Assembly: GCA_009103225.1 (NCBI GenBank)
Contig: RHPI01002533.1
Location: 1,617,186 to 1,681,185 of the forward strand
Length of the DNA: 64,000 bases
DNA from: Chlorokybus atmophyticus
Taxonomy: Eukaryota; Plantae; Mesostigma and Chlorokybus algae
Reading direction: 5' to 3'
The translations under genes were made by a program, and so were the position numbers. Of the stretch, positions 7,901 to 52,669 are shown one piece after another. Every line of letters begins with the position of its first letter. The stretch's first letter is position 1. The notes under the pieces were generated by a model. That model was not told the origin of the DNA and did not search any database. It worked only from the letters and a program-made list of their open reading frames with translations.

Positions 7901-8591
7901 AGATACGGATCACTTGCGGAGCAGTCAGCTTGCTAAGGTTGCTCAGAGCTGGCAGTCCCCTTGTAAGGTGAGTGTTACATGAAATATGTTTGTTTCAAAT
8001 GTTGCAATACAATGGGCAACTTTTTGAATTGCTAGGCGCAGTGAACTTCACTGACGTAGACTTCACTGAGCGAAGGCTGCAGAAGTTGATGAACGAGCAC
8101 AACTTTGCGGCAACTTGCTTTCACCGTGACAAAGTCACGTGACTCCAGTATCATTGTCATCACCATACCCATTGCTTAAATTGACAATACCATACGAACC
8201 GGTACCGGCGCCTTGAAATCACTTGTTGTCCGGATGAATTAACATAGATACCAGACGCGCAGCCTGCTGCGCGTCTGGTATAGTGCAGTATGATTCCCCA
8301 GTCATACTGCAATGTACTGATCGTTTAATAACAGCACCATTACTGACCGACAGTCTAGGCAATGGTGTCGACTTGAGTTGAGGGCGAATGCCACTGTCCG
8401 TTATGTTGCTCCAGATGTCTGTTCGCTCAGTACTACTCCCCCCGCTATGTGGCGGCGGCGGCGGCGGCGACAGGCGCGAGGATGTCCTTTTGACAAAGCA
8501 GTAGTGGAAACATCATACACAAATTTGTGTAGCATAATGTCGCCCTGATCGTTCACTCTACAGCCTAGAAGCCTAGACACACACTTTGCTG

Positions 8592-8594
<3 letters not shown>

Positions 8595-8671
<77 letters not shown>
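8595..8671. repeat. (CA)n microsatellite just upstream of the GH26-GT2 start codon
   Basis: Seen directly in the sequence. Confidence 0.97.
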
Positions 8672-8672
<1 letters not shown>

Positions 8673-8705
8673 CCATACTATTCTGTATACACACACACAT
8701 ACACC

Positions 8706-11700
8706 ATGGCTAAGATCGCGAGGTGTGCGCTACTGGCGGTAGCAATCCTCATCATCACAGCGTCGTTTGATCTTGTATGGCATCCTGTAGAAGCAGCGGC
8801 GACCTTGTCAAGCAGGCCCCTTGCGTTGCTGGAGCCGGAGTATGGCGTGTACTTTGGCGTCAACATGAACAACAGGTGCTGATCCTCGATTGTGTTCGTC
8901 GATTGGGTGTGTACGAGATTAAACGTTTCAGCAACCTGGTAGCACAATGGTTGAAACTGTAAGTTCATAAAAGTTGAGACAATCCAGCATTTGTCCACAA
9001 TGGAGTAAGTTGAGCGATTGTCTCAGTTTCAGAATTGATCTTGACCATGCCGTGCCAAATGATGCGCGCGGCATTCCTTCACAATCAACGCGTATACACA
9101 TCGTCTTGTTCTCGACCTGTTAGCTAGTACACATGTGCAGCAAGCAGGCTGAATTGCCTTGCAAGCACAAAGTGCCCGCAGTTTAGACTAAACACGTCAC
9201 CAGTCGGTCACACAGAACTTGCCACTGCCCAGCTGTCAGCTTCCGTATTGCACACGCAAGGAATAGGCAATGATCTAAGCTCAAACTGACATCAACAACC
9301 ACAAATAACACTACCACCACCACCACCACCACCACCAACCACCACCACTACTGGCAGCGTGCCATTGGATGCGTACGAGGCCCAGCTGGGGCTGACGCCA
9401 GCCGCGTACGTGATCTTCATCGAGTTCCCGCTGCAAGACAGCGACGTCGCTCTCCTCCGGGGCTTCTTCGCAAAGGTGAGAGAGTGGGTGTGTTTGCTAC
9501 CTTTGAGCAGCAGATAGTGGACCAGCGCCACCGTGAAACCCACACGCACGCACGCACACGCATAGGCACGCGTTCGCACGATGCCACGCGCGGTTGCGCA
9601 CAGGCACATACACCCGAACACGCAAAGCATCTGCACATGCGCGTGTGCGTGGCATGCACATGCACGCACGATCATGTCCGCACGCGTGTGGTGGTTTGTG
9701 GTCACGCACACGCGCACAGCACACCCACACCCACACCCACACCCACACCCACACCCACACCCACACCCACACCCACACCCACACCCACACCCACACCCAC
9801 ACTCCCCCCTCCCCAGCTCGCCCCTCTGGGCGCCCTCGCCGTCGTGACCGCCGAGCCCGTCTCCGGCCTCTCCCTCGTCTCCGAACCCGAGTGCCGTCGC
9901 CTCGGCACGGAACTCGCCGGCGCGGAGAGGGCGGGAGTCGGGGGGGTCGTGGTGAGGTTCGCGCACGAGATGAACGGGAGCTGGTATCCGTGGAGCCAGA
10001 GGCCGGGGGAGTATAGGGAGAAGTTCAGGCTACTGGCCAAGTGAGTTGGGGGGGGTGTACGATATGTGGTTGGGTGGTCGTGGTATGGATGTGGGGCTGG
10101 GGTGTGCGGGGCCAGTGTCACAACCACTGCTTTGCACAGACTGTGGGACTAGTTGTTGTTGTGCGCTCGTTTAATCGGAGCATCCTGCGACCCCGTGTTT
10201 GACTGACCGCTCGTTGGGGTTTTACTTATTAGCCCGTGGTTGTTGTTGTTGTTGCGCTCAACTTATCTTTTGTTGTTTGTGTGGCAGGGTGATCAAGGAG
10301 ATGACGTGCAGGACGGCAATGCTTTGGGCTCCCAACAACGGCGGCGGCTACCCGTTCTCGGGGGGAGTGTACGAGTGCCGAAAGGGCGAGTGCGACGACT
10401 TCAACGTAAGCATGGCAAGAAGTGGTACATGTATCAACACATCCCAACATACTCCTCCTCGTGCAGCTCCTCGACACGGACGGCGACGGCGTGTTGACCA
10501 TGGCGGATGACATGTACGAGCCGTACTACCCGGGCGACGACGCGACGGACTGGGTCGGAATGACCATCTATCACTGGGGACTCAAGTACCCGTGGGGAGA
10601 GAACCACGTGTCGGAACCGCTGCAGTTCTTCCAGATGGTGGGCGAGAGTGTGTATTTGTGCGTGGGCGTGGGCGTGTATATCTGCTCACGTGTGCATTGC
10701 GCGTGCGCCTCTGTGTGCGTAAGTGTGTGCGTGTACGCGTGCGTGTGAGCCTGCGCGCGTGGTGGCATGCGCGCGCGCGCACGCGCCTGCGTGCCTGTGA
10801 GCCTATGTGTGTGCGCGCGCGCATGTTCGTACGTGCCTACGCGTGTGTCCACACGCGTGTATATAAGTGTGCGTGTACAAGCGTTATGCCTGCTTGATTG
10901 GCGTACGTGTGCGCGTGTGCGTGCGCATGTGGGCGGATTCATATATCTCTCGTGCGTCCCCAGTTCACTGGCACCTACAACGGCAGCGACGGCGACCAGA
11001 CCGCCGTCCCGGACTTTTACGCGACGTACAGCGGCGAGGACAGCGTGCACGCCAAGCCGTTTGCCATCCCCGAGACCGGCGCCTTCTTCAACACGGAGTA
11101 TTACGGACCTGGGGACGACGAGTTCAGCATCAAACAGGCGTGGTGGATACAGGTAAGGCATTGTCGTTGCTGATGTTGCTGTTGTTGTTGTTGTTGTTGG
11201 CAGTATCATCGAGCTACAGTAAGCGACAATACTATACACGATGTTCTTGCTATTGTCGAGTTGTTGTTGTTCTGAGTATATGCAGAGTTGAGTGACTGCA
11301 TCATGATGTAACACACACCTCCTGCGTAGGTGTTCAACGTGTACGGCGACAACTCGTACGCGGTGGACATCTCGGTCCACTTCCCTCGCATCCACATGAT
11401 CAACTGGTTCGACTGGAAGAAGTCCGAGCAGGAGGCGTATGGCGGCGACATTGTCGACTGGTCAATCTCGCTTAACCCCTCAGTAAGTGACTGTGAACAT
11501 ACACACCCACTCTCTCACATATTGCTCACCTGACTCAAACTGTGTGTTGGGGTAGATTCGTGACGCGTTCAAGAGCTACATCACGCGTCCGATGGCGGAC
11601 GGCCGCACGTACGTGAAGCTACGGCCGGAGCTTAAGTGGGAGCTCGGCGCCATTGATACGTCCCTCGTGCCCAAGTCTATGAAAGTGACCAAAGGTGAGA

Positions 11701-14700
11701 AGTACACACGCACCCGCACAAGCACACATGCGGGCCTGCGACACGCATGCGCAAACACATGCACTCATGAAGACATTACCACAAGCCAGCACGCGAGCAC
11801 ATCCGTTCAAGGATGCATGCGTGCGCACACATACGCACACACACACACACATACGCACGCACGCACATGTGTACACGCGCACACGCGCGCACGCATAAGC
11901 GCATGCACAACCCTGTACACACCACGGCAAATAACGTACACTCACGCCCACATTTCAGACCCGTGGGTGGTTCCCCTCCTCGTCCACACCAGCTCTCTCT
12001 CTGACGTTGGCGTGGACCTCTTCGACTCCTCCAACCCCTCCACCTACTACGCCGGCGGTCGCTACCCCAACCTCACGCTCGGCACCCACAACATCACCGT
12101 ACCCATCTACTTCACATCCCCGCACTCTTTCCCCACATCACGTACACTCTCACTACGCGCGTACCTCGTCCCACCCGGTGTCGACGCCGCCACGTACGCG
12201 TGCATACGCGCCGCGGACGACGTGTCGATACACGCCGAGAGGGGACCCAACATGGGTTTGGCCAAGAAGCATGTCACCACATTAGCGGGACCGATCACGT
12301 TGGCGGCGTGCGTGGGTGGGCTGGGGTTAGTGTGGGTGTGGGCAGTGTGGGGGAGGTGGAGGGATCAGAAAGGGAAGATGAAACACGCGCATGCGGGAGC
12401 GATGAGGTATGCGGCTTCAAGAGGAGATATACCGGCACTCGATGTAAGTAGTGTGTGTGGTGGTGTGTTTGGAGTGACTGAGTGAGTGAGTGAGTGACTG
12501 AGTGACTGAGTGACTGAGTGAGTGAATCTCTCTTGCCCCCCCACNNNNNNNNNNNNNNNNNNNNNNNNNNNNNNNNNNNNNNNNNNNNNNNNNNNNNNNN
12601 NNNNNNNNNNNNNNNNNNNNNNNNNNNNNNNNNNNNNNNNNNNNNNNNNNNNNNNNNNNNNNNNNNNNNNNNNNNNNNNNNNNNNNNNNNNNNNNNNNNN
12701 NNNNNNNNNNNNNNNNNNNNNNNNNNNNNNNNNNNNNNNNNNNNNNNNNNNNNNNNNNNNNNNNNNNNNNNNNNNNNNNNNNNNNNNNNNNNNNNNNNNN
12801 NNNNNNNNNNNNNNNNNNNNNNNNNNNNNNNNNNNNNNNNNNNNNNNNNNNNNNNNNNNNNNNNNNNNNNNNNNNNNNNNNNNNNNNNNNNNNNNNNNNN
12901 NNNNNNNNNNNNNNNNNNNNNNNNNNNNNNNNNNNNNNNNNNNNNNNNNNNNNNNNNNNNNNNNNNNNNNNNNNNNNNNNNNNNNNNNNNNNNNNNNNNN
13001 NNNNNNNNNNNNNNNNNNNNNNNNNNNNNNNNNNNNNNNNNNNNNNNNNNNNNNNNNNNNNNNNNNNNNNNNNNNNNNNNNNNNNNNNNNNNNNNNNNNN
13101 NNNNNNNNNNNNNNNNNNNNNNNNNNNNNNNNNNNNNNNNNNNNNNNNNNNNNNNNNNNNNNNNNNNNNNNNNNNNNNNNNNNNNNNNNNNNNNNNNNNN
13201 NNNNNNNNNNNNNNNNNNNNNNNNNNNNNNNNNNNNNNNNNNNNNNNNNNNNNNNNNNNNNNNNNNNNNNNNNNNNNNNNNNNNNNNNNNNNNNNNNNNN
13301 NNNNNNNNNNNAATCCAAGGCAGGCCCAAGCCCCTTCTCTCTCTCTCAGCTCATCGAGCGTCACTCCCCCCTCTTCCTCATCGACTCCTCCGTCTCCGGC
13401 TACACGGCCCTCCACGCCGCCTCCGTTGCCGGTCACGTCGCGGCGCTGGAGTGGCTCCTGCGTCGCGGGGCCTCCGTGCGTTGTATCAAGGAAGACGGGT
13501 GGAGAGACACCGCGCTGCATTACGCGGCGGCGAATGGCAACTTGGCGTGCGTACAGGTAGGGGGACGATACTAGGTGGATGTGGGTGTGGATGATGGGTG
13601 GTGAAGACTGTTGCTCCCCAGGTGTTGGTGGCGCATGGGGCTGACATATTTGCGAGGAATTTCTGTGATGCCACGGCGGCGGATTTGGCGGAGGCGGCGG
13701 GGAACAAGGAGATAGTGAGGTATGTTTCTTTTCTGTGTTTGTTTGTGTTTTTGCGGGTTGAGAATGACCACCCGTGCATGCATTGAGGTGTGATACTACA
13801 CTGCAGAAATGCACAAAGAACACAGAGTAGTATGCACACGAGCATTGTCCTCAAGAGCTACCTGCTACAGGTACTTGGAGAAGATCGGTGAGCAGATTAC
13901 CAGTGGGAGTGAATCACCAGGCCCTAGATCATCTGTTCGAGGAACTCCACTCTCCTTTGAAAGACTCGAATCACTCCACAACGAGGACAATGAGGACAAG
14001 CCTGAGCATGCCGAGCACGCGCACCACTTTAGAGAACAAGTCCAAGGACTCACTGTGGCCCTCAGTGCTGCGCGCATGTTGTTGGACAAGCGTGCGGCCA
14101 AAGCCAACAGCAACAACAACAACAACACGGGTCGGTCCTCCGTCAGATCTCCTGTTGGGTTGTCGCGCTTCGCTGCCAATGTGGAGGAGGACAACAACGA
14201 GGGTGAGGGTGAGGGTGGGAAGGGTGTTGTTGTCGGGGAGGTGAAGACAACGACTACTACTACTGTGGCGAACAGCAATGGAGAGAGGAAGTCGAGGTTC
14301 GCCTCACGTGTAAGATTCCAAGCTGATGAGGAAGAGGATGAAGTGAATGCTGCTGTGGTTGGCACCCCGGTGCTGTTCTCAACTGAAGATGACGGCGACA
14401 ACAACAACAACAACAGCAATAACGACGGTTCTGCAAGCGATGTTGTGGATGCAGAGGACGTGGACGTCGCCGAGGTCGGCGCACCCGTAGTGTTCTCGGT
14501 GGAACTCGATGACAACAACAACAACAACAACAACACCAACAACACCAACATGCATGACGACGGAGCCGACGTTGGTACACCTGTTGTGTTCTCGTTTGAG
14601 GACAGCAACAAACCTCACTCTCAATTACTTGACCGTCACGTGCGGTTTGGGGGTACGATGGACCGAGCAGGCAAGTCTAGCCCGAGACGGTTCCCGGTTA

Positions 14701-17700
14701 CTCCCCGGCAGGGAGAGATCAACACTAACCGGCTGAACCCGCTTGCCCGCACGCCCGTGTTCAATACTATTGTTGATGGTGGTCATGAGACTACAACAAC
14801 TACAACATCGCAACAGCTCAAGCAGAGTCCCACACTGGACTTGAGTGGTGATGATGGTGAGGGTGATGGTGAGGGTGAGGGAGTGGAGAGAAGTGAACAG
14901 ATTGCGTCGTTCCCGTTGGAGTTTGATGCGTCGGATGATGAAGGGGACACTGCGACGGGTGATGCAGAAAGTCAGATGGTAGACAATGTGGACAAGCCGT
15001 CACCCGCACCGCCGCGCACACAACCTGAAGGTACGCGATACACAGTTGCATAAGCGCTTGCTCACGCGCACACATGTATACATGTTGCGTGCGTGTGCAC
15101 TCGGCAACATGCGTGCGTGTGTGCGTGCGTGGCAGCACATGTTGTGTGTGAGCGTGAGAGCGTACTGTGTGTGAGAGCGTACGTGTGCACCTGTGCCCAT
15201 GTGTCAGAAGAGAATACTTTTTGTTATTGAAGAACGTGTTGCTGTTGCTGTCCCAGTTGATGGTGTTGCCGTCGGTCACGACGCGTTGAGCGTCCTCAGC
15301 GCGGCGTTGCCCCGCCTCAAGCTGCACAAAGCCCAGGAGGAGGCCGCCGCCCTCTCCCGCCTGTCCCCGCGACGGTTATCGAAGGAACAGCACGCCGAAG
15401 GGCGACGACAATCGAAGGAACAACACGCCGAAGGGCGACGACAATCGAAGGAACAGCACGCCGAAGGGCGACGACAATCGAAGGAAGAACAACACACAAC
15501 GCACCCACAAGCACAAGCACAAGCGCCAACGCCAGTGCAAGCGCAAGCACAAGCCCAACTAGATGCCTCCCCCTCGCTGCTTCGCGCCAACCACTCCATC
15601 GCCGCACATCGATTGGAGCGCTGGGAGACAAGCGTCGGCACAACACCCGACAAGTGGGTGTTACACCCACCCACCCCCACCCCCACCCCCACTCCTACTC
15701 ACTCACTCACTCACTCTCTGCAGTCGTTCTCCAAGGGTGTTGTCTGAGACCAAGTCCCTGACGCCCTCCCCCCGCGAGCCCCCCCGCGACGCGCGCGCGG
15801 TGCTGGAGCGGGGGTGGGAGGGGGCGGGCAGCGCGGGGACGAGGTTGAAGGAGGGGACGTACGTCTGGAGGACGCTGGCAGTCATGTGCCAGGTAGGTGG
15901 GTCGTGTGTGTGTGTGTGTGTGCGTGGGTGGGTGGGGGTGGGGGTGGGTGGCGGCGTGCATGGTTATGTGCATGTGTGCGTGTGCCTGTGCATGTCTGTG
16001 CGCCTGTCTGTGCATTCGAGTGCATGAGAGTGTGCGCGTCTGCGTGTGTGTGACCTGACGTTGAGTTGCTTCCTTGTGATTTCACGTACCTTTTGAAGCC
16101 ACAGGGTCACAACCCAATACACAGTCTCACGATCACACACTTAAAGCAAGGTGTCCGACACATATTGCTCACAGGTGTTGGGCGTGATCTACTTCATCTG
16201 GCGCGCCCTTCGCACGTTCAACCCCAACTACATGCCGCTGAGCATCATCTTCTTCGTAGCAGAGTTCATCTCCTTCATACCCTCTTTCATCTTCGTGCGG
16301 GAGATGTGGTCACAGATCGAACGCGACACGCGCTCGCTGGACGTGAGTGTGACTTGTTGATGATGGTGCTGGTGTGGTTGTCTCACGTGTGTTATTGTGA
16401 GCAGGAGTTGGGTATACCCGAGGACGAGTATCCCAACGTGGACGTGTTGATCCCGTGCTACACCGAGCCGGTAGATGTTGTCGAGGCCACCACGTGTGCC
16501 GCCCTCGGCATGCTCTACCCGCCCTCAAAGTAAGTCTCATTGCATGCATGTGCATTGTGTGTTGTCTTACCGTTATGTTGTGTCTGTGTGTCCTGCAGGC
16601 TGACCGTGTACATACTTGATGATGGCGCGAATGATAATGTTCGTGCTATGGCACATAAGCTCGAGTTCCAACGCAAGTACCTGAAGCGACAGGCGCAAGT
16701 CATCTATGTCTCACGCAAGAAGGTGATTGCACCCCTCTTCCGCTTACCGAAAGAACATGCGAGTAGACACTCGGCCAAGCATCCGCGCACTCATCCAATC
16801 ACGAGAGCGCGTGTGTGTGCGCGTGTCAGTAAACACACACACAGTGACACACGCACACGCACACACACGCACACGCACGCACGCACATGCACTGATGCTT
16901 GCACGCACACACGCACAAAAACCTCGCACATGCACTCGCACTCGTGTGCACCCCACTCACACTCACACTCACACCCACCTCAGGTGAAGGGCGTTCCCCA
17001 CCACGCCAAGGCGGGCAACATCAACCACTGCTTGCTGAAGGCGGGCCACGCGCGGGGGGACTACGCGGTCGTCTTCGACTGCGACATGATCGCCAAACAG
17101 GTACACATGATACACACATACACACACACACACACACATGTGGTCAACACTCTCCCCCCAACGCAGAGCTTCCTGATGCGCACGATGCCGCACTTTTGCA
17201 TCCAAGCACGAGATGGCAAGTGGCGGTTTAAAGAGAAGGCAGCATTCTTGCAGACACCACAGGTGAAAAGGAGAGTCACTTGTGCGTGTGCGTGACACAC
17301 AGTACTCACCCAACATGCATGCCCACACACAGGACTTTTATAATGTGGAGCCAAGCGATCCTATGGGCCACCGCGCGCGCTTCTTTTATGGACCCATGAT
17401 GCAGGCAAGCAGAGTGTGAACAACACTCGACACACACACATACCCACTCTCTCAATCTCCCCTTCTGTTGGGTCATCTCACTCACTCGTGTTGTTGTTGT
17501 TGTACAGGGCCGTGACGGCGCGGGTGCGTGTCCGTGTGTCGGCACCGGCGTTATCTTTCGACGCGACGCGCTCGTCTCCATCGGGGGACAGGTGACTACA
17601 CAGCCGTCTGTCACACGCCATGTGTGTGCGTGCGACAACTACCACTTCAAGTAATGTTGTTGATGTCGTGTGGGCTGGCAGGCTTACGGGTCTGTGACAG

Positions 17701-18042
17701 AGGACTACAACAGCGCAATGTGCCTACAGGTGAGCCAACTTGTACATCGCATGGTGACATGTTGTCCTGTTGCCTGTGCACTCATGATATGTATGTTATG
17801 TTGTGACAACAACAGGGTGCTGGTTTTGCGTCGATGTACCTCAACTCGCGCATGATCTTCGGGATGGCTCCCGACGACGTGGCCAACACATTCTCGCAGC
17901 GTCTGCGCTGGGCCATGGGCTCCCTGCAGGTTTGTGTGGGTGTGTGGGACATGTGTACACCATGTGTACGTGTGTCTATTCTCTCTCCATCAGTGTGCTT
18001 GTAGTGTATGAGGACCCCTGAGGTCCCAAGCATTGAGGCTTA

Positions 18043-18085
<43 letters not shown>

Positions 18086-20590
18086 TCTGTGCCGAGACAA
18101 CCCGCTGCTTAAATCAGGACTCACGTGGACGCAATCGCTGCTGTTCTTCCAATCTGCTTTCCAGTACGACAATTGTGAATAGTGAATACACACCCGCACA
18201 CCCGCACGCATGCACGCATGCACAACATCAGTCCAACATCACCCTTCGAAGTCGATACGCTGCAACAACTCTGCATGTTTCTGTCTCAGGTATGTCATGA
18301 GCGTCCCCACCCTCTTCATGGCCTGCATCCCCGTGGCGTACTTCTTCTTCTCCGCCGCCCCGATATACGCGCTAGTAAGTGTTGGCGATGTTGTATCATA
18401 CACACATACACACATAAACACACACTCACTCACTCTCTGACCCTGTCTCATCCTCTCAGATCCATGAGTTTCTGGTCTTCTTCTTCGGGTACTACCTTGT
18501 GAACCGATTGATGCTGTGGCACGCACACCGCGGGGTAGAGGGAGGGGACTTGGAGCTGTGGAGAGGATCGCAGGTTATGTGTGTGTATGTGTCGGGTTTG
18601 TGTGTCTGCATATGTGTGTATGTGTCGGGGGAAAGTAACTCACTGCCTGTCCTGCTCCACGCAGATGTGGGTGTGGTGCAGCCCCAACAACCTCCTTGCC
18701 TGCTGGAAAGTCTTCTCAACAGAGTGGAAGGTACTCAGCTTCCTCAAACTTGGAAAGGTACACCTCGACCCCAACATCCCACACTGCCAACACTTGTTGC
18801 CATGCACCCACACCCACACCCACACACCCACACTCAGGTTGGTTTTGCGGTGACGAGCAAGGGTCCCAAGAACGCCAGCTGGCATACCGAGCTCGCCACT
18901 GCTCTCAAAGACACATGGCACTTTGTCATGTACTACATCTTCGCCGTCGCGGGGATGGCGTATGTTGTGTCGCTCATCGCGAGAGACAAGCTTGCCATGA
19001 CGCAGATCGGGTCTCAGGTGTGTGTGTGTGTGTGGGGAGGTGTTGTTGTTGTTGTTGTTGTTGCTCAAAGCTCGATTTGTTACACTTGGCACCAGGCTGT
19101 GGCGGCGCTTTGGTGTGTTCTCATCATGGCTTACGTGTGGCCACCGCTGTCCACGCTGAATATATGGCGAAAGGCGCAGACAGGAGGCCAGGTATGAACT
19201 GTATCATTGATGTTGTTGCTGACACAACATCGATAGCAAACGATCCACATCACATTACAACAACCACAGGTGTTGTGGCACACGCCTCGTGCGCAAGACG
19301 CTCTCCCCTCGCGTCCCGCCACGCTTCGCAAGTCCACATTCAAGTTCCTCCAATCCATGAAGAAGTCCTTCTCGCTCAAACGCACCGGCTCCAACTTCGC
19401 CCGCACGCCAACCAAAGCACACACCAACATGGACACCAACACGGACACCATGAACACATCTGATGCGGCCACTGCTGCCAACACTGCTGCCAACAGCGCG
19501 AGGGACCCCTTAGCTGAAGCTGGCTTCAACAGAGAGAGTCTTAGATTGAACACTAAATTGAGAGTCAACACAATGAGGCCCGCAAGATTGAGCGAGGAGG
19601 GGGGGGAGGAAGAGGGGTTGAGTGGTGAGGAGAGGGCGAGGATGGGGGCTGTCAACAATAAGGCCGAGTATCGACGCACGACACAGGTGAGTGGGTGTGA
19701 GTGTGGGTGTGGGTGGGTGGGTGGATGTGCGTGTCTGCACGTGCGTGTGAGCATGCGTGTTCACATGCGCGCACACGCATGCCCATATGCATGGGTGGGT
19801 GAGTGCCTGCCTGCGTGCGTGTGCGTGTGCGTGTGCGCGTGTTTGCATGCACACGCGCCCATCGCATGTCCACCAACATGTGCTGTTGTATGCACCAGAT
19901 GGTGAACGAAAGATTGAAAGGCGACGAGGAGATGCAGCGCGACATCGCATTGCTCTACGCCCTCTCCACCAACGACAGCGACGACAGTTCAGCAGATCCC
20001 AACAATGCCAGCAGCAACGCCAACACACTTCACCCCTCACGCCTCGGCCTCGCACCGGACTCACCCGCAGCACGCGCACTCTCCTCATTCCGTGCGATGG
20101 TGAACGCATCCGCATCATCATCAACAAGGTCAATGGACTCAAACAACAACTCAGCCGCATCATCCATGCGAAAGGGAGGAGACTCGTTTGCACGTGTTGT
20201 AGGTAAGTGTGGTGTGGACATGCTTGTGCGATGTTGGGTTGGGTTGGAGTATACTGTATCATGTGGTTATGTAACACATAACTGTGTGTTGCAGCGCAAG
20301 TGTATCCGAGCGAGGACTTGCGACAATCTTTACGCAGGCAACAATCGATGCATCCGAAGGACTCGTTGCACGAGTTCACGCGGTACATGACTTCTCGAGT
20401 GGTTTATGAAGAGACAGTGTTAAGGGACCACGCGTCGCTGGTAGCCACGCCAACGTTTCGGTTCAAGAAAGCCAAGCATGACAACTACACGTTCTTGATA
20501 GTGAACTGCATCATGTTCTTGGCGTTTGGGATTGGGGGAGCACTGTACCTGATACTAGAGCAGCCGCCGGAGGACTGGCTAGGATTTTAA
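8706..20590 (+). CDS. Multi-exon GH26 glycosidase - TM - ankyrin - BcsA/cellulose-synthase-like GT2 fusion protein
   Basis: Signal peptide MAKIARCALLAVAILIITAS. GH26 motifs RFAHEMNGSWYPW (E 9967), YYPGDDATDWVG and KPFAIPETG (E 11072). TM ITLAACVGGLGLVWVWAVW followed by RWRDQKGK. Ankyrin repeats GYTALHAA and DTALHYAAANG. GT2 motifs VDVLIPCYTEP, YILDDG, HAKAGN, FDCD, FLQTPQ, TED (17697), QRLRW (17897) and FAVTSK. Splice phases were checked by hand for exons 1-3 and from the last pre-gap exon through the GT2 N-terminus; the remaining exons were assembled from the ORF track. One N gap (12545-13311) lies in a presumed intron. Confidence 0.8.
9718..9800. repeat. (CACACC)n hexanucleotide microsatellite in intron 2 of the fusion gene
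   Basis: Seen directly; it is the source of the spurious PT/HP/HT ORFs. Confidence 0.95.
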
Positions 20591-21165: not shown

Positions 21166-21654
21166 CCCCCCTCCCCAGCTCGCCCCTCTGGGCGCCCTCG
21201 CCGTCGTGACCGCCGAGCCCGTCTCCGGCCTCTCCCTCGTCTCCGAACCCGAGTGCCGTCGCCTCGGCACGGAACTCGCCGGCGCGGAGAGGGCGGGAGT
21301 CGGGGGGGTCGTGGTGAGGTTCGCGCACGAGATGAACGGGAGCTGGTATCCGTGGAGCCAGAGGCCGGGGGAGTATAGGGAGAAGTTCAGGCTACTGGCC
21401 AAGTGAGTTGGGGGGGGTGTACGATATGTGGTTGGGTGGTCGTGGTATGGATGTGGGGCTGGGGTGTGCGGGGCCAGTGTCACAACCACTGCTTTGCACA
21501 GACTGTGGGACTAGTTGTTGTTGTGCGCTCGTTTAATCGGAGCATCCTGCGACCCCGTGTTTGACTGACCGCTCGTTGGGGTTTTACTTATTAGCCCGTG
21601 GTTGTTGTTGTTGTTGCGCTCAACTTATCTTTTGTTGTTTGTGTGGCAGGGTGA
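21166..21654 (+). repeat. Apparently exact 489-bp duplicate of 9804-10292 (GH26 exon 3 plus intron 3)
   Basis: Constant offset of 11362 at both ends. Bounded by a poly-C run on the left and a single N (21655) on the right. Confidence 0.93.
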
Positions 21655-23124
21655 NCAGAATTTTGACGCGCTAATATGCATAATATTGCCTCCAATTGAT
21701 CAATTGAGTATCCATCATTAGATTAACATATGCAAATTGAGTGTGATGCATTGTTGTTGTTTAGCTTGCTCTGTTTGCACACTTGCTTGTTCTACTGTGG
21801 CCCCTCTTCGAAACCTGGAGTTTGCTTCACCGACCAACTCTACTGTTGGTTATATACGCATCATATATTGCACATAGAGTATCTTGTGTGCACGCAAGAT
21901 AATATGTGATTGAATCTGTGTGCAATATATATAATTGTTGAAACTTTCGCAAGAGCAAAGTATGTTTTGCGCTTTATGTTATGCGCTTTGTAATTGTAAC
22001 TGTGCATGTTATTCACTAACTTACGTGCAGTGATGCATCATCATACAGTGGGATAGTATTTTTGTTCAAGGTACTCATTTGCTGAAAAGATTGCACAATT
22101 GTAAAAATTCAGCTCATGCATGATATATCATACATGAGCTGGATCATGATAATGCACCATATGACCATATTAATGAGTTCAACCACACCATCTGGCTGTT
22201 AGAAGATGTTTTACTCAATTTTTGCATTTGTACTTTGTTGCATACGTGATTTGTTTATCGTAGATGAAGTGATGTGTAGTTATAGTACTGAACCCTAACA
22301 ATTGCGGTGACATAATATCAAACCTTATTTATTGCACAAAAAACATGTTGACCAACAATACTCGATATTATTGACGCTACACAGCAAACTCATATAATTT
22401 GTTGCATATTTCACATGATTATTTCACACCAAAAATATTCCTCAAGAATGGTCAAACGGATACAACTTATATGATTCATGTTATCGCAGTTTAATAATCA
22501 AGCTTAATAAAATAACAACCGACATATTCATGTCGTAAACACATTTTTAACGCAATTGCTGCAATATAATTCAATGCGGCATTACGTGATTGCATTATAA
22601 TATCTCATGCACATTTACGAGCAATATTAATGAGTTCGTTTATAAACTGAACGGCCATTATTAAGAAAAATGTGTTTAAAAGACCGTTTTGTGTTCGTTC
22701 GGGCTATATAATAATAAGCAATAAAAAATAGAACAAACAAGCATGTAGCAGTACATATGTCAAAGATATGTCATAGAGTATAAAGTATTATTATTTTACG
22801 ATGTATACCTTTTTATAAGTTAAATTAAGTACAATTATCATCGAGTACAAACCAAACCCATGATATGATTGATAATTATCATATTGCATATTTTCTAGTT
22901 AACATTATAACATCTTTGGTGGCAAAATGTTTTACGATCATCAATCATATCGTCGTTGTCCGTGTTGCAAGTTTATGTGTGTCATGTTGTAAATTAAATC
23001 CGAAATATTGCATATAACGAAAACGTTGTTGGCAAAATAAAAATAATTATCATTATTGCTCCGGTACGTATTCGTTTGTAGGTGTAGGTGCCCATACGCA
23101 GGTTCAAACCCAGCCCTAGGTATA

Positions 23125-23550: not shown

Positions 23551-26500
23551 ATGTCGCGCTCCAAGCTTAGTGACTTTGTCATTGGGGACGCCCTTGGGAA
23601 AGGCAGCTTTGGTACGTGCCATCCCACACTACAATATCTACATATTATATGAGCGCAGTGAGTGCAAGTGCCTGTAAGGACACTTGCACTTACCTTCAAA
23701 GTGAGTGCTACAATGGTGTTGTCGCAATCACGCTAAAACTGTGATGCTTTGTGTGTGCAGGCGTGGTATACAAGGTCACACGAAAAGGTAGGCGACAGGT
23801 CTTTGTGTAAAGTGACTTGCAAAAAGGGTTCAATCGACATATGGTACTGATTACACGGGAGGGGGCAATTGGCTGTCTGATACACTTGTGGGTTCACAGC
23901 GGACAACCGGACATATGTCATAAAGCAGATTCATATTGAGCAGCTAGATCGCAAGGAGCAGGAGGACGCGATCAATGAGGTGCAGACTGGGAATAGAGCT
24001 TACATGTACACACAGGAACACACTGCCACTTCCTCGACAATGACTGCTATGAGGATTTCCACATAGCTATAGTCATCCGTTCATTTGTCGGTGTATCATA
24101 ATGTCATTTGTGTATGATGGACAGGTGCACGTGTTAGCTTCACTCGACTCCAAGCACGTCATCAAGTACTACGACTCCTTCCTAGGTATATTGACACAGA
24201 TACACTCATCGCATTGTGATACGTTGTCATGTCACTGCTGCGATGTCATGTCCTCCATTGCGCGCACCTCAATGCACTGGGGCAGATGGCGGCAAGCTCA
24301 ACATCGTCATGGAGTACGCAGCGAATGGGACACTGCATCAAAAAATAAAAGTGAGTTGTGTGTGCCACGTTTGTACCAAGATGTGTTGCAACTCCATGGC
24401 AGTTGCTCCAATTCTCCCTAACTTGCAGGCTCAGAAGGGCAAGCCATTCCCGGAGCAGAGCGTGTGGAATTACTTCATACAGACATGCGTCGGTTTGAAC
24501 CGTATCCACTCAATGGCACTGCATATGGCGCTTGACTGCACTTGCACACAAATGAGCCCACACGAACACTACACTACACTACTGTGCGGGTTACCAGTAG
24601 TGAAGCACGCACTTGCGTCACAGTACATTTGGCGTGTCTTCTGTCACTACCTGTGTTGCCTTGACTTACACCTTCTGGGATCCAACAGACATCCACTCCA
24701 AGAAGGTTCTCCACCGTAAGTGTTAGGCTCCTATTGTTACAAAGTGGGGCATGCAAACCTGCACTTAAACAACGGCTGACATTCCGCCTGCGTTACAGGT
24801 GACATAAAGAGCTTGAACATCTTTCTGGGAGACGGAGACCAAGTCAAGGTGAGTCCACACAACCACAAGCATTCGGGTTGGATGCGTGTGATGTATAGTT
24901 TTGCTCAAGTCCAGTGTTCGTGTCTTTCTTCGCTCAGCTGGGAGATCTTGGCGTTGCTAAAGTCCTCAGCACGCAAACCAACTTTGCTAAGACCCTTGTC
25001 GGTACTCCGTACTATTTGTCACCGGAGCTGTGTGAAGACAAGCCCTACAACGGTACACATTGGAAACACACGCACGCATATGCACACGCGCGCACACATG
25101 CAAATACATGAGTCAATGGCAACAGCTCCAATTAAGCTCGCTGACTGTGGTTTTTGCAGAGAAATCCGATGTGTGGGCGTTGGGATGCGTGCTGTACGAG
25201 TGCTGCACGTTGCGGCATCCTTTTGACGCGGCGAACCAGGGCGCTCTGATCCTGAAGATCCTGCGGGGGAAGTACCCGCCCGTCAAGGGCTACAGTAGGG
25301 AGCTGAGCGACATCATGACGGCGTGCCTCACCCGCGACGCGTCTCTCCGACCCAGCACGGGGGAACTCCTCTCACTCGCAGCTGTGCGCGCAAAGGTACA
25401 TAACACTTACTCCATGTGCACGTTGGCTGACCGACAGCACAACAACATGTTGTGTCATGTTGGGCTAGCATGGTGTTGTAGGCGTCAGGATTGTATATAC
25501 ACACGCATGCATGCGTGCGCGCATACACACAAGTTCATCTCATGGTGTCTGCGGCAGGCGGTTGAGTTTGGAGTGAAGCTTCCAGAGGGCCTCGCGGTGC
25601 GCGTATCGCGACCAAGCACGCCGCTCACACCGCACACGCCGCCGGGATCCGCAGGAACCAGCACTTCATCGCCACGCACACCTTTCTCTGCTGCGCTGTC
25701 TGAGATGGTAGGAAGCACGTGGCTTTGCTCTGGCTCTGCCTGCTCGCATGCACACTGGCAGAAAAGGGTCTGTACAGACACATGTTGGTTTGTGATACTG
25801 ACTTGACATGCACAGGATGCGGTGGGTTCCGTCTTGCCTGTCGTGGCAGAAGGTTAGTCGGGATACGTTAGTGCTTGAGTTGACACATACGCGCACACTC
25901 AATATGCACATTGCTGACTTGAGCTTTTCTACCTTGAAGCAGGTCCGCCGACACCCAAGTCCTCAAGAAAAGCATCAGGTAGTTTGTCAAGCACCAGTGT
26001 ATTTTTATTCAGTGGCTCCTGATGTAAACTTGTTCAGTCTAACCAAGCATGAATAACAGCGGACGGCCTAGCTGCCGACATGTCATCGCTATCAATGGAG
26101 AAGAGCAACGGGTCTTCTGAGCAGTCGTTGAATTCAACGGTAGGCTCCTGAAGAGATTTGCGTTGAAGTTGTCAACGGTTGTCTTCAACTGTAGTGCTTA
26201 CAGTGAGCACATGTGCGCAGACACTCAATGGCTCAGGTACAAAGACCAAAACGTACCTTGTCAAGAGGAAGCTGGCACCCGCGACGCCCAAAACTCCACA
26301 GTCGCCTGCGTCGCCCATGAGTGAAGGTAGAAGGACGTGTGCTGTTGCTGTTACTTGGTCTGCTCCTCACACTTTGTGTCATGGCCTCACTGCTGCTCTT
26401 GTTCAGATCACTCTGCGCCTTCCGCCAGCCCGAGCACCAGCCGACCAGAGCGGGTATGCAAGCCCACGCACATCACACACAATTACACACACGTGCACGA

Positions 26501-30372: not shown

Positions 30373-43315
<12,943 letters not shown>

Positions 43316-47337: not shown

Positions 47338-50300
47338 ATGGTAGGGCGCTACGCTAGTGCTTGATGTGCAGTCGCTTTGACACGACGTTGGTGTGCTTAC
47401 GTTGCAGCCTTTGACGGCTGGCATGTGAATTGGGCAGCACTGTCACGAAAGCAAGCTTGCCTCTGCTTACTACGCAATGTAAACATATAACACGTTACAG
47501 TCAACCAGCACTGGCTGCATGCATTTGCTGCTTGGTTGTGACGGAAGACCTGTCTGTTACTACTGAGCGGCAGCGTGTTGTTGTGTTACAGTTGTTCGTG
47601 CGTTTTACTCGCTCAAATGTCCCTCTGCGTGGTGCGAAGGGGGTTTGGCACGACAGCGGCGCAGCTGCTAGCCCGCAACAGCAGAGTCAGGTTGAAGCCA
47701 AAGAGATATCTGTCTGTGCTGCCCTGCAGACCGTCAGTCAGGCCCGTGAAGCTGTCATCAAGGAGGTCCGCTGCTTGGCTTGCATGCACATGCGCCACAA
47801 GTTTGAGCTGCTGCCTGTACAATTAAACTTGTGGCCTGCTTTGGTGTTGCAGCTTTCGTGTGTACAATACCTTAGCAGTAGGTGCAACAGCCTCGTGTAG
47901 GGAGATGGAGGAACAACATTCCCTGTCAAGCATAACTCTGCAAGATGACAGCTTGCAATACCATTCCAATGTCATTCTAGAGAGTGTTGCAAAGGTAAGC
48001 AGCAGTTACATGCCCTCACACAATCACACACTTGCAAATGTTGGATATGGTAGTTGCTCACCCTCTGACGCACGCAGAACTTCTACGCTACTGATCTCCA
48101 GTATGAGAACTCCAGCATGGCAGACACTGACAGTCCCCTAGCAGGCGTTATACTTGGTACGTTCATTTGCAGCCAGGTGCGGTGATGAATTGGACTTTGT
48201 AGGTGTGTGCCAACCTCTTTAACGCTTGCTTCCGCACCAGGCGCAAAGGTGGCTACGCCAAAGGCCTACCACGACGTTCCTCTTGGTCGACTTCGTTGTA
48301 GACGTACGCTTGGCCTGGGACGCATCAAGATCTGGTGGATGCAACCCACATGGGGCGCTAAGGGCGCCAACATCCCGTCTGAAACTCAGGTTTGTGCAGG
48401 TTACACTCCCACTTGATGTTGGCATGGCTGCCGTTTACTACACCTATGTTCATCATACGCATTCTGTGCTTGACCAATTGTATCAATGGGTGAAGTTGCT
48501 GTTGGCTGAGCTGGAAGAAGGTGGACCATATGCGGCGATCCTTCCCTTGATAGACGCTTCGGGTTTTCGGGCCACTTTGCACGATGGTGAAGGCACCAAA
48601 GACAAGGGGTGGCTTACGCTGCGCATTGAGAGCGGCTGCCCTCAGACAATGGTACCCTTACCTTTCAAGTTGGATGTGTGCATGTGTGTCGTGTTGGGTA
48701 CACCCCTGCTTGGTGATGGTCAAAGGTGGTGGTGGTGGGGTGGGGTGGTGGTGGTGGTGTGGGGGGGGGGGGGGGGGGGNNNNNNNNNNNNNNNNNNNNG
48801 GGGGGGGGGTCCCCGCCTCATGGATTGCAAAGCTCGTTTCGCATTTGTATATGTACAGCTCAGCACTCCAACGACATCACCTTGTATGTATGTGCTTGCA
48901 GGCGTCTGATTGGAGCTCTCTCATTGCAATTACTGCCAGCTCAAGCCCTTATGAAGCCATCTCAGCTGCCGTCGAGCTGGCGTCAAAGAGGCTCAAGACC
49001 TTCCGCACACTCAAGGAGAAGACTCTGCCACCATGGTTGGACTACTTCGGATGGTGCACCTGGGATGCATTCTACTACACTGTTTGCGCACAGGTGACTT
49101 GCATGCGTCATCAACAACGGTTTCATATCGGCATCCAGTGTTGCACGTGCGCTCACCCACGCATTGCACTGCAGGACATCCCAGCCGGGTTGCGCACACT
49201 CAATGTTGGAGGCACTCCTGCGAAATTTGTCATTATTGATGATGGCTGGCAATCAGTACAAGTAGACCCCCAGTATCGCAAGCAGTTGTCCAATGCAATG
49301 ACCGAAGCTGCTGTGGACCATTCGCTCCTTCGCAAGCTTCCACAGGTACTTATTCGTTGCACAACATCAGCAATACATGTACTATATGCTAACCAAATCA
49401 CCCCTTGCTGAAGTGACTCGATTGTTGATCATGTGTTGCAGTATCTGTTGCGCCCACTACAAGTCGCTGGTAACTACATTCTAGGCTTGGGAACCAAGGG
49501 TGTTCAGCTTTGGTATGATAACCTGGTTGCACCAGCTCCAAACGGGTCCCTACGGGTAAGTAGTACTCCAGTTTGCAGCATAGAACTCGACTTGCCGTAC
49601 GAGGCATGCTGTTCAAAGACATCAATGTTGCCATGCACGTGCAGGTGAAAGCTTGGATTTTGATGGCACATTATCTTCTGCGGGCACCACTTCTGGCTCA
49701 CTACGCGCAAGTCATGACCTTGTCCAAGCGCTTGGTTTCAGTCCGAGCGAACACGAAGTTTGCACATATTGATGCTGGCCGTGAAGACGGCGAGTCCACA
49801 CCTGAGGAAGGTGGTGGCCTCAAAGCTGTCGTCAAGAACGCCAAGGAGGTGCATGGAGCGAAGTGGATGCTGGCTTGGCACGCTTTCCCAGGCTACTGGG
49901 GTGGAGTCTCCCCTCATTCGGAGGATACTAAAAAGTGAGTCCTCTGGCCGATTCATCCAGTTGAACACTTTACATTGCAAAGTGTTCAACGACTGACATT
50001 AATTGCGCTGGTAGGTACGACCCTTCCTTGGTAGCTCCCAACAACATCCCTGCCATCATCGAGTACGAGCCGCATGTGCAGTGGGACCCCACAGCCATGG
50101 GCGGTGTGGGCGTTGTGCCCCCGGAGCGCGTTGCTGACCTGTACAAGGACATGCATTCCTACTTGGCTAACGCTGGCATAGATGGCCTCAAGGTCTGTCA
50201 CATCTTAAGTTAGCATGAGGCATGCATGTGCTTTGTCATATATATGCTAACAACTTGTAGCACACTGACTTGGGGTGTATCGGTGCAGGTTGATGTGCAG

Positions 50301-51774
50301 GCCGGTGTGGGCGCCATGGGCACAGGGTATGGTGGCGGGTCTTCTCTCGTCAAGAGATACACCGAAGCACTGGAAACATCTGTGAAGAGGCATTTCCCTG
50401 AGGGCAGCGTCATGGGCTGCATGTGCCACTCCACCGAGAATTTGATGCATTACATGGATACACCCGTGGCACGCGCCTCTGATGACTTCTAGTAAGTACA
50501 TACATACAGCAAAGTGCCGTGCCATTTTCATTACCACATACAGAGTCATTGTTGAGTTGGTGCTTGCAACATGCCGTTGGTGTCAACACTCATTGACGCT
50601 TCACTATATTGCTTGCAGCCCTAGAGTGGAGGCCAGCCACAGCGCACACATCGTGGGTGTGGCATACAACAGCTTGCTTATTGGCGAGATTGCACAGCCC
50701 GACTGGGACATGTTTCATTCAAAGCACCCGGCAGCTGGTCTGCATGCGGCAGCCAGAGCTGTTGGTGGCACAGCGGTATGTCATATATGGAAAACTTGGG
50801 TAGGTTGCATAAGCCACATCGCTTGCGCAGTGGTCTAAGCGTCATGTTTGCACAGCTGTACGTCAGCGATGTCCCCGGTGAGCACGATTTTGATCTGTTA
50901 AAGAAGGTAGTTCTGCCCGACGGTCGCATCCTGCGTGCTCTGCTACCTGGCAGGCCAACTCGGGACTGCTTGTTTAATGATGTTTCTCGTGACTGCAAGA
51001 CTGCCCTGAAGGCAAGTGCCCTCTCTAAGAGCTGCAGTTCAAGTCGACTTGTGTTGAGACATGTGCAAATGCTTACCCAAGTTGTATTGCCAGGTGTGGA
51101 ACCACAATAAAACAGGCGGTGTGCTCGCAGCATTCAATGTGCAGGGAGCATCTTGGGACCGAACAAAGCGCGCATTCACCACCCATGATCCACAACCACC
51201 AACTCTGGAAGCCACCCTGTCCCCTCGTGATGTTGAGCAACTCTCTGCCTTCCCTGAAACAGGTGTTCTTAACATACAAGTTGCGTGCGTGAATCACTTT
51301 GATTCTGTGTCGAAACTGCAAGTGGCCCGTTCGCTTGCACGTCCACATCTGTCTAACATGTTCCCTCTTGCAGGCATATACGCAGTTCATCAACACAGCA
51401 CCGATCAGCTGCACATCATGCCCATTGACGGGAAGCTGCAGTTGAAGCTGAAGCCTCTGGAGTATGAGATTGTGAGCGTGACGCCGGTGTACAGGAAGCT
51501 TGATGTGCAGTTTGCTGCCGTCGGCCTCGCAGACATGTTCAACGGCGGTGGAGCTGTTCTGGCCCAAGAGTTGGTCAGTCACCACCACAAGGTGTCTGCC
51601 ACCATCACTGCACGCGGGTGCGGTAGGTTCGTGTGCCACACCAACATCTCTCCTGTTGGCGTGTGTGTGAACGGTGCCGCATGCGAGTTCACCTTCGACG
51701 AGGCCACCCAGCGGCTGGAGTTCCTGGTGCCATTTGTTGAAGCTGATTCTGTTGCCATTGGTGTGCTGTGGTAA
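47338..51774 (+). CDS. Raffinose synthase / seed imbibition protein family (GH36-related alpha-galactosidase or galactosyltransferase), multi-exon
   Basis: RIKIWWMQ...[54 protein letters not shown]|[48 protein letters not shown] and [10 protein letters not shown]. The 5' end is uncertain. Confidence 0.92.
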
Positions 51775-52669
51775 ATTTTGCACACAAGCTTTGCCACAAG
51801 CACAGTACAGCTGCGCCATTGCGCAGAAAATGGTTGGTCGGCCATACTGCTGGGCTGATTCAGCAGCAGCGCAGCACTCGGTCTGCTACGTTGACCATGT
51901 AGTTTGTTACGTAAGAACAGCAGCCCAGCTGTTGTAGCGTTGTTGTGCATAGGGTCATATCCTTGATGGCCAGGCCGGTTGAACTACATTTGCTTGGGGC
52001 CTGTAGTGTAATTAGGCGATTGAAGTAGTCAAACTACTATTGGTTTGATGGTATTATACATAAATAACTGCTCTTGCCTATACTGCTGGCAGGGCAGCGT
52101 TTATGTGCTGGCCATTGGATTGTGTATTTAACTGCAAAGCGCGCTGGCTATTGACTGGTAGCAACCACATTGTTGTGTGGTGATGTTGGTAACCTTGCCT
52201 CCTACAGTATAGCAGACTTGGCAAGGCATATTGATAGGTTCTTGTCATTCAGCTTGCTTCACATGTTGCTGGTTGCTTGCTGCTATGGTTCATGCTATGT
52301 GTATTAGCACGTATATGATTCCGGCCTTTGAGCTTGCTTTACAGCAACTCTTATGTGTGATGTGCAGAATCATTACTAACACCACCTGCGTCCTGGTAGT
52401 CAACACTTTGCTTGCATCAGTTGCGGGTGTATCACCATATGCCCACCACCATAATGCTCAGTAGCTGCAGCACGTGGCTTGTGTAGATTATTCCGCGTAG
52501 AGCGTGTGTATTGGGTAGGCTGCACAACAGGCTGGCAAGGCTTCTAAACTCATGTTCCTCACTGGCTGTGGGCAATTCCCTCATGACACAGGATATCACA
52601 GGTCGTGCACTTTGAAGCACAAACCCAGCAGGGCACTGCACATAAAGTATGCAATGTGCAGCGTATGCA

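Follow-up and report, generated by a model that had tools for sequence, protein, structure and literature searches.

A candidate single-chain GH26 hydrolase, ankyrin and BcsA-like GT2 synthase in the nuclear genome of Chlorokybus atmophyticus

The gene and its domains

The window analyzed here is a stretch of 64,000 nucleotides (nt) from the alga Chlorokybus atmophyticus (GenBank assembly GCA_009103225.1, contig RHPI01002533.1, positions 1,617,186 to 1,681,185 of the forward strand), and all positions below are counted from its first letter. Its plus strand carries a coding region whose predicted product joins in one chain a glycoside hydrolase of family GH26, ankyrin repeats and a processive glycosyltransferase of family GT2 that resembles bacterial BcsA (Table 1). 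We are confident, short of certainty, that this is one nuclear, intron-rich gene for a multi-pass membrane protein of 2127 amino acids (aa). The order of exons, domains and motifs had been proposed from the letters alone (hereafter, the sequence-only reading); all of them are present and form one continuous coding sequence. As judged by sequence comparison, this domain content is beyond chance, with 404 bits for the GH26 part and an E value of 4e-79 for the GT2 part against a Nostoc GT2.

Table 1. Features of the predicted gene (TM, transmembrane)
Feature	Positions	Strand	Residues	Basis or remark
Whole coding region	8706-20590	+	2127 aa	32 exons, 6384 coding bases; splice-site and frame chaining
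Exon 1 and short 5' untranslated region	8682-8875	+		ATG at 8706; RNA contig (run X1)
GH26 domain	8790-11582	+	29-390	Exons 1-8; Glu147 in exon 3, Glu304 in exon 6
Spacer	11583-12293	+	391-539	Beta-strand-rich
TM helix	12294-12350	+	540-558	Hydropathy 1.89; conserved in homologue P0002
Four ankyrin repeats	12387-13913	+	571-705	Exons 9-12; intron 9 splits repeat 1
Intron 9	12444-13349	+		Contains assembly gap 12545-13311; flank sequence
Disordered low-complexity linker	13914-15862	+	706-1256	Exons 12-14; open frame of about 550 codons
Two TM helices before the GT domain	15863-16297	+	1257-1278, 1289-1307	Hydropathy; first spans the exon 14/15 junction
GT2 GT-A core	16334-18107	+		Exons 15-24
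C-terminal membrane part, predicted channel-forming	18108-19191	+		TM 1607-1651, FAVTSK 1700, TM 1726-1776
Tail of about 300 aa with final TM helix (20498-20554)	19270-20590	+	final TM 2098-2116	Exons 30-32; hydropathy 2.17

The model was built by chaining open segments of the plus strand through canonical splice sites with the frame kept. It has no internal stop across its 32 exons, and the stop codon at 20588-20590 is followed a few bases downstream by TGTAA. Thirty introns are GT-AG and one is GC-AG, and their lengths range from 61 to 482 bases, apart from intron 9, which holds an assembly gap. This is the setting of nuclear DNA in an intron-rich eukaryote. The GC content at third codon positions (GC3) is 0.76-0.84 in the exons that encode domains and 0.61-0.67 in the linker and tail (0.61 in the linker). 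Exon 12, a linker exon, starts within the last ankyrin helix, and exon 14 finishes within the first TM helix of the GT2 part. Because that helix straddles exons 14 and 15, the linker exon and the GT2 part share one helix.

Transcript data came from three small RNA runs of one study (X1, X2 and X3), kept as contigs. An X1 contig covers exon 1 from 8682 and stops exactly at the predicted donor at 8875, and the 5' part of exon 14 is also covered by an RNA contig. Four predicted introns are confirmed by X1, two in the linker (15031-15256 and 15654-15723) and two in the GT2 part (16723-16983 and 17101-17166); the offset reported for 15654-15723 is explained by two unaligned contig letters. The depth of X1 is low and alike at both ends of the gene (3.6 in exon 1; 2.5-5.2 in the linker and GT2 part). 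Neither exon 1 nor the confirmed junctions were detected in X2 and X3, whose pieces are shorter than 30 nt, with the exception of a 130-nt piece in X2 that lies on exon 15 with 4 mismatches. The only predicted GC-AG intron, intron 20 (17405-17507, GCAAGC...ACAG), lies outside the RNA contig coverage.

The protein begins with a hydrophobic stretch (aa 7-25, hydropathy peak 2.3) that we read, from its sequence, as a signal peptide or signal anchor. Searched one by one, the exons, of only 16-74 aa, mostly give marginal matches in Pfam and among structures in the PDB. Exon 3 alone reaches 15.5 bits against PF02156 (E 0.012), under the cut-off, and a homologue search with exon 3 alone, under a length filter that excludes proteins of 2100 aa, gave no match. 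When exons 3 and 5 were compared with plasmids by tblastn, they matched a "glycosyl hydrolase" of Paenarthrobacter and Arthrobacter plasmids, with at most 72% identity over exon 5. The spliced residues 29-390 share 47% identity over 369 aa (E 2e-106) with the protein of Paenarthrobacter nicotinovorans plasmid pAO1 (WP_229778674.1, 416 aa), and this colinear match of eight exons to an uninterrupted bacterial protein validates the splice model. The pAO1 protein passes PF02156 (40.8 bits, cut-off 20.2 bits), its 120 best relatives are all Actinobacteria, many of them named GH26, and a hidden Markov model (HMM) built from 120 actinobacterial relatives scores the algal domain at 404.6 bits. GH26 membership thus follows by transitivity, since a 47%-identical relative passes PF02156 and the family HMM gives 404.6 bits.

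Both catalytic glutamates are kept, the acid/base E147 in HEMNG and the nucleophile E304 in PETG. In the alignment of the actinobacterial family these motifs correspond to the invariant E176 and to the column of E329, and the H-E motif aligns with the H-E of CtLic26A and CfMan26A. On these sequence comparisons, the N-terminal domain is a hydrolase of family GH26, with a predicted (beta/alpha)8 fold and the catalytic pair of glutamates in place, and it belongs to a divergent subfamily, seen here in Actinobacteria. Within an alignment of 40 actinobacterial members, the acid/base Glu is invariant and the nucleophile column (E329 of P0123) holds Glu in 35 members and Gly in the other 5; the Gly members may, by their sequence, be natural non-hydrolytic or glycosynthase-like variants.

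The fold was approached through the bacterial relative, whose AlphaFold2 (AF2) model serves as a proxy for the algal domain (mean predicted local distance difference test score, pLDDT, 87.7). The first 35 Foldseek matches of this model are all GH26 domains, including engineered and fusion constructs. The best are the lichenase CtLic26A (2cip, E 1e-14) and then the mixed-linkage xylanase AlXyn26A (7xjr, E 8e-14), with template modelling scores of 0.72-0.75 on the target at only about 20% identity; mannanases and a beta-1,3-xylanase also match, with E 1e-10. A sequence search of solved structures gave the same ranking, with CtLic26A and AlXyn26A ahead. The sequence-only reading had suggested a product of "mannan, mixed-linkage glucan or similar". 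The bacterial proxy gives a weak pointer by which a mixed-linkage beta-glycan substrate may be slightly favoured over mannan. Mannan as the default GH26 substrate was down-weighted, the proxy fold being nearest to a lichenase and a mixed-linkage xylanase.

Between the hydrolase and the first membrane helix lies the spacer, which has no Pfam match and no relative among 1.84 billion representative proteins. A single-sequence AF2 model of the exon 9 region has six strands at low confidence (pLDDT 52.7), and exon 9 scored below 0.8 in the ESM Atlas. The basic stretch RWRDQKGKMKH directly follows the TM helix at 540-558, and the earlier claim of a TM helix with a positive-inside tail holds at this point. 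The ankyrin repeats are evident from exon 10 (Pfam Ank_4 E 2.9e-14, Ank E 1.4e-12, Ank_2 E 1.9e-10; overall E 1e-9 to 3e-14); exon 11 has weak Ank matches, and the register of four repeats was read from the sequence. The linker that follows matches no Pfam family and is about 550 aa long, shorter than the roughly 600 aa first estimated. Within it, exon 13 encodes three to four tandem copies of the peptide SKEQHAEGRRQ (15400-15500).

The first ankyrin repeat is interrupted by intron 9 and its assembly gap. Exon 9 ends at 12443 with ...GCA CTC GAT followed by GTAAGT, and exon 10 opens with CTC ATC GAG, so that the donor (GAT/GTAAGT, 12444) and the acceptor (...CTCTCAG/CTC, 13349) are both of phase 0. 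The predicted junction between residues 589 and 590 reads ...GCACTCGAT/CTCATCGAG..., and the two exons joined make one whole ankyrin repeat, with helix 1 and part of helix 2 before the gap and the remainder after it. A (GAGT)n-like repeat 3' of the donor runs into the Ns and probably caused the gap; a pyrimidine tract and CAG follow the Ns.

An exhaustive search of the same 1.84 billion representatives with exon 9 (spacer and TM helix) gave two matches, one of which is an unrelated ankyrin protein of 3743 aa. The gene's own protein was not found in that library. The other match, P0002, is an open frame of 140 aa on L001, a metagenome contig of the Joint Genome Institute (JGI; Ga0672872_0451725). 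Residues 33-90 of P0002 match the exon before the gap, and residues 99-140 match the exon after it. When the spliced model was compared with L001 by tblastn, a single unbroken alignment of model residues 530-639 spanned the 589/590 junction (41% identity over 110 aa, E 1.5e-17). No exon appears to be missing in the gap, since the two sequences are colinear with a length difference of at most 1 residue; the gap lies within intron 9. L001 (304-726) comes from an environmental eukaryote that has the same TM and ankyrin module without the gap-holding intron; at 1271 bp the contig is too short to reveal GH26 or GT2 flanks. A metagenome scan with P0002 returned only generic ankyrin proteins.

In the GT2 half, the membrane hairpin at 1257-1307 aligns with the N-terminal TM hairpin of the Nostoc GT2 (39% identity, E 5e-32). 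The core motifs stand in order: DDG at 1371, HAKAGN at 1412, DCD at 1437, QTPQ at 1473, VGTG at 1511, TED at 1534 and QRLRW at 1572. Four TM helices follow the core by hydropathy (1607-1651 and 1726-1776), with FAVTSK at 1700 between them, and this membrane part is aligned to the Nostoc protein up to its FQVTPK. Hydropathy and this alignment point to a channel, with TM helices on both sides of the core and an FxVTxK gating loop. Tail exons 30-32 have no Pfam match and no PilZ domain.

Exon 18 matched bcsA genes and a Nostoc "glycosyltransferase" among plasmids, and exons 16, 18 and 23 match TIGR03030 (CelA) colinearly at 27-34 bits each (E 1e-8 to 1e-6). The spliced GT2 is 38% identical to the Nostoc flagelliforme GT2 (E 4e-79), with fifteen exons colinear, and 32% identical to Cupriavidus BcsA (E 8e-50); DDG, DCD, TED and QRLRW are aligned in both relatives. 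An alignment of the Nostoc GT2 with the separate exons by MAFFT was misaligned and was dropped. The Nostoc GT2, the closest full-length relative scanned, scores 326 bits against a TIGR03030 equivalog cut-off of 699, and on this basis the spliced algal GT2 is unlikely to pass that cut-off.

Plant cellulose synthases (CESA) are marked by plant-conserved (P-CR) and class-specific (CSR) insertions and an N-terminal zinc finger. The algal protein has none of these, and its motifs are spaced as in BcsA, with about 40 aa between DDG and HAKAGN and about 97 aa between DCD and TED. Compared with solved structures, the Nostoc proxy scores about 175 bits for BcsA, about 122 for plant CESA and 87 for CslF6. 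Taken by its sequence, the GT2 would be a BcsA-like processive synthase in mechanism, but it is not a BcsA orthologue and is probably no BcsA equivalog. The earlier label of a BcsA-type GT2 with complete motifs is therefore right about the motifs and does not extend to BcsA proper, given the missing PilZ domain and the 326 of 699 bits of its relative.

Known architectures and bacterial relatives

Hydrolases accompany polysaccharide synthases in several systems. The GH9 enzyme KORRIGAN is needed for cellulose synthesis with CESA, as a separate protein, and the fungal alpha-1,3-glucan synthases Ags1/Mok1 are fusions of GH13 to GT5. The algal protein is, by its predicted topology, like Ags1 in being a eukaryotic extracytosolic hydrolase or transglycosylase fused to a synthase, whereas the families differ. 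The sequence-only reading had named Ags/Mok and the pair BcsA and BcsZ as precedents. A closer one is NdvB, the "Orphan" of pseudomonads, in which a periplasmic GH17 is linked through a transmembrane region to a cytoplasmic BcsA-like GT2 (PMC10237404). The NdvB GH17 is proposed to cleave and cyclise the beta-1,3-glucan made by the GT2 (PMC10237404). The algal protein, in its predicted topology, shares with NdvB of pseudomonads and rhizobia a single chain with an extracytosolic hydrolase of clan GH-A, a TM link and a cytoplasmic BcsA-like GT2, so the hydrolase-TM-GT2 design principle is already known. It differs in that the N-terminal hydrolase is GH26 and not GH17; moreover, NdvB is bacterial, has no ankyrin repeats, no 550-aa linker and no C-terminal tail anchor, and its product is cyclic beta-1,3-glucan. 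In literature searches we found no published description of a protein combining GH26, ankyrin repeats and GT2, including in a survey of the plant and algal cellulose synthase superfamily, in agreement with the earlier remark that this architecture was not known from green plants or algae.

With BcsA, the algal GT2 core shares 32% identity, all the motifs including FxVTxK, and the company of a hydrolase. In the bacterial system that hydrolase is a separate GH8 protein, BcsZ, whose gene lies beside bcsA in the Cupriavidus plasmid operon bcsQ-bcsA-bcsB-bcsZ (L003). The algal fusion, by contrast, lacks PilZ and BcsB, and just two TM helices precede its GT domain. In plants, membrane-anchored mannanases AtMAN2 and AtMAN5 must be enzymatically active for glucomannan synthesis (PMC13181414). 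There too, with CSLA, the synthesis of a wall polymer needs an extracytosolic hydrolase; the hydrolases are of GH5_7, and synthase and hydrolase are separate proteins (PMC13181414).

The GT2 of Nostocales (WP_100903921.1, plasmid pNFSY07) is 38% identical from the first TM helix to the gating loop and likewise has no PilZ. Among 80 loci of this GT2, the gene adjoins DUF3131 (78 loci), a PIG-L deacetylase (69 loci) and a GH26-like protein (27 loci), whose gene lies about 2.7 kb (two genes) upstream; GT2 and GH26-like genes are thus separate there, unlike in the alga. This cluster (L002, L006-L085) surrounds an uncharacterised BcsA-like GT2 without PilZ, and the polymer of the DUF3131/PIG-L/GT2 cluster appears to be undescribed.

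The actinobacterial GH26 (WP_229778674.1) shares both catalytic Glu motifs with the algal domain, but it is a free-standing protein of about 415 aa, secreted or anchored, with no introns and no BcsA-like GT2 nearby. Since the closest GH26 relatives have no such neighbour, the algal pairing was not inherited from them. Descent from a bacterial GH26-GT2 operon was considered; it is ruled out for the closest GH26 relatives, and its support from the GT2 side is weak. Judged by sequence, a GH26 of bacterial type and a GT2 of cyanobacterial type, each now with spliceosomal introns, seem to have been newly combined in the fusion. When the Nostoc GT2 and the Paenarthrobacter GH26 served as queries, homologue searches listed nothing beyond close relatives from bacteria, under a length filter that excludes proteins of 2100 aa.

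Proposed action and its alternatives

Hydropathy places a signal at the N-terminus, then a single TM helix, a pair of them, a group of four and lastly a helix resembling a tail anchor. With the signal cleaved, GH26 and the spacer would be extracytosolic, at the cell surface or in the Golgi lumen. The ankyrin repeats, linker, GT-A core, gating loop and tail would be cytosolic, and the last 11 residues would lie outside. The topology of the sequence-only reading, with the hydrolase outside or lumenal and the ankyrins and GT2 core in the cytosol, is thus self-consistent by hydropathy.

A putative course of events can be laid on this topology. The TM helix at 540-558 would return the chain to the cytosol, and the GT2's own helices would form an export channel. 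The GT2 would polymerise a beta-linked glycan from a nucleotide sugar and push the chain through the channel. The nascent chain would emerge beside the tethered GH26, which could cleave or transglycosylate it; in this way the chain might be set in length, detached from the synthase or grafted to the wall. Regulators or the cytoskeleton would probably dock on the ankyrin repeats and linker, and the product would lean to a mixed-linkage beta-1,3/1,4 glycan, following the fold of the GH26 subfamily; glucans of this kind are among the known products of BcsA-like GT2s. That the GH26 acts on the product of its own GT2, in a synthesise-and-process manner, is by analogy with known systems the best reading, and we would give it an even chance of being right. 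The fuller proposal is doubtful as a whole, namely a self-contained eukaryotic machine that makes, exports and cuts a mixed-linkage beta-1,3/1,4 glycan and was assembled from an actinobacterial-type GH26 and a cyanobacterial-type GT2.

Several observations weigh against these proposals. All the RNA support stems from a single small run, available in contig form. No contig of X1, X2 or X3 lies over 8876-13999, which comprises the gap and the rest of the GH26 half. The exon 11/12 and exon 14/15 junctions are bridged by no contig either, and a transcript of full length was not observed. On the hydrolase side, the fold evidence for the substrate comes from the 47%-identical proxy and not from the algal domain. 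The closest GH26 relatives (Paenarthrobacter, Kocuria and Williamsia) are without a BcsA-like GT2 neighbour, and the GH26-like protein of Nostoc bears just a remote resemblance to the algal GH26 (18.6 bits, under the Pfam cut-off). Finally, no orthologue of the same architecture was retrieved in the length-filtered searches.

The alternative that survives best accepts a single gene and supposes that the GH26 remodels or degrades some other polymer of the wall or environment, the fusion serving only to deliver both enzymes to the same membrane. The free-standing state of the nearest GH26 relatives would fit it, and a spacer of about 150 aa would let the hydrolase work at some distance from the channel exit. 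Nor can the linkage made by a GT2 be read from its sequence, as illustrated by RiGT2, a BcsA-like GT2 that makes (1,3;1,4)-beta-glucan (PMC10374906). However, where a hydrolase and a processive GT2 are known to share a chain or an operon (NdvB; BcsA/BcsZ), they work on the same polymer, and if the substrate were unrelated, one would hardly expect a permanent 1:1 tether. We therefore hold co-delivery to be unlikely.

A continuous reading frame could also yield mostly separate proteins, through an internal promoter or alternative start, or through proteolysis, in the linker. The linker is long and of low complexity with the lower GC3 noted above, and the patchy RNA coverage leaves the junctions on either side of it unjoined. 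Against this stand its roughly 550 open codons, the two linker introns spliced in frame, and the sharing of exon 12 with an ankyrin helix and of exon 14 with the first GT2 helix. Separate products are thus rather improbable.

The assembly gap could likewise be the meeting point of two genes (GH26-TM-ankyrin and ankyrin-linker-GT2), or of a scaffold misjoin, misread as one chain. The length of the gap is an estimate, RNA or DNA reads that span it are lacking, and the scaffold has at least one odd join, as indicated by an exact 492-bp copy of exon 3 and intron 3 lying 580 bp past the stop codon. But the two flanks hold halves of one ankyrin repeat with matching phase-0 splice sites, and the independent homologue on L001 carries both halves in one uninterrupted frame. 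Read-through past the exon 9 donor meets a stop after 13 codons, so exon 9 has no natural ending, and a misjoin would need to have struck one and the same intron in two genes that share the TM-ankyrin module. A misjoin or a pair of genes, either of which the sequence-only reading had flagged as fatal to a single chain, is accordingly quite improbable.

There is, finally, little chance that the protein is an NdvB-like synthase in which the GH26 acts mainly as a transglycosylase, cutting and cyclising or re-joining the chain into defined soluble products, since we know of no cyclic beta-glycan in green algae, characterised GH26 enzymes are hydrolases (the solved ones matched here being a lichenase, xylanases and mannanases) and the algal GH26 retains both glutamates, even though the order of parts is that of NdvB (extracytosolic clan GH-A hydrolase, TM, BcsA-like GT2) and the Gly nucleophile of 5 of the 40 subfamily members indicates that the subfamily is not uniformly hydrolytic.

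The synthesise-and-process reading bears on what controls the length of extruded polysaccharides, their release and their attachment to the wall. In plants hydrolase and synthase are coupled as separate proteins, and their coupling is difficult to take apart; it would become directly testable in a BcsA-like synthase that is naturally fused 1:1 to a GH26 with its catalytic residues intact. One such protein could both extrude and trim a cell-wall polymer. The fusion would also suggest a synthase for an algal beta-glycan that has no known biosynthetic gene, and it would add a eukaryotic counterpart to bacterial NdvB. If the make-export-cut reading is true, algae would have a route to wall-polymer synthesis and length control unlike the plant CESA/CSL system. 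If the ankyrin module docks cytoskeletal or regulatory partners, it would offer a handle on how algae position wall synthesis.

Other features of the locus

The 492-bp copy lies at 21166-21657, about 580 bp past the stop codon and in AT-rich DNA, and it derives from 9804-10295. It holds exon 3, which encodes HEMNG, together with intron 3 and the first 8 bases of exon 4, and is identical to its source except for one N at 21655. Such a copy points either to a segmental duplication of very recent date or to an artefact of the assembly.

Introns and the 5' flank of the gene (8586-8681, 9702-9815, 11786-11925 and 16806-16935) are rich in (CA)n and (CACCCA)n microsatellites. Further downstream on the plus strand, Pfam matches at 25060-25806, 32794-39956, 48226-51819 and 59264-59938 mark ordinary nuclear genes, for a protein kinase, a neurobeachin/BEACH-type solenoid protein, a raffinose synthase and NOP5.

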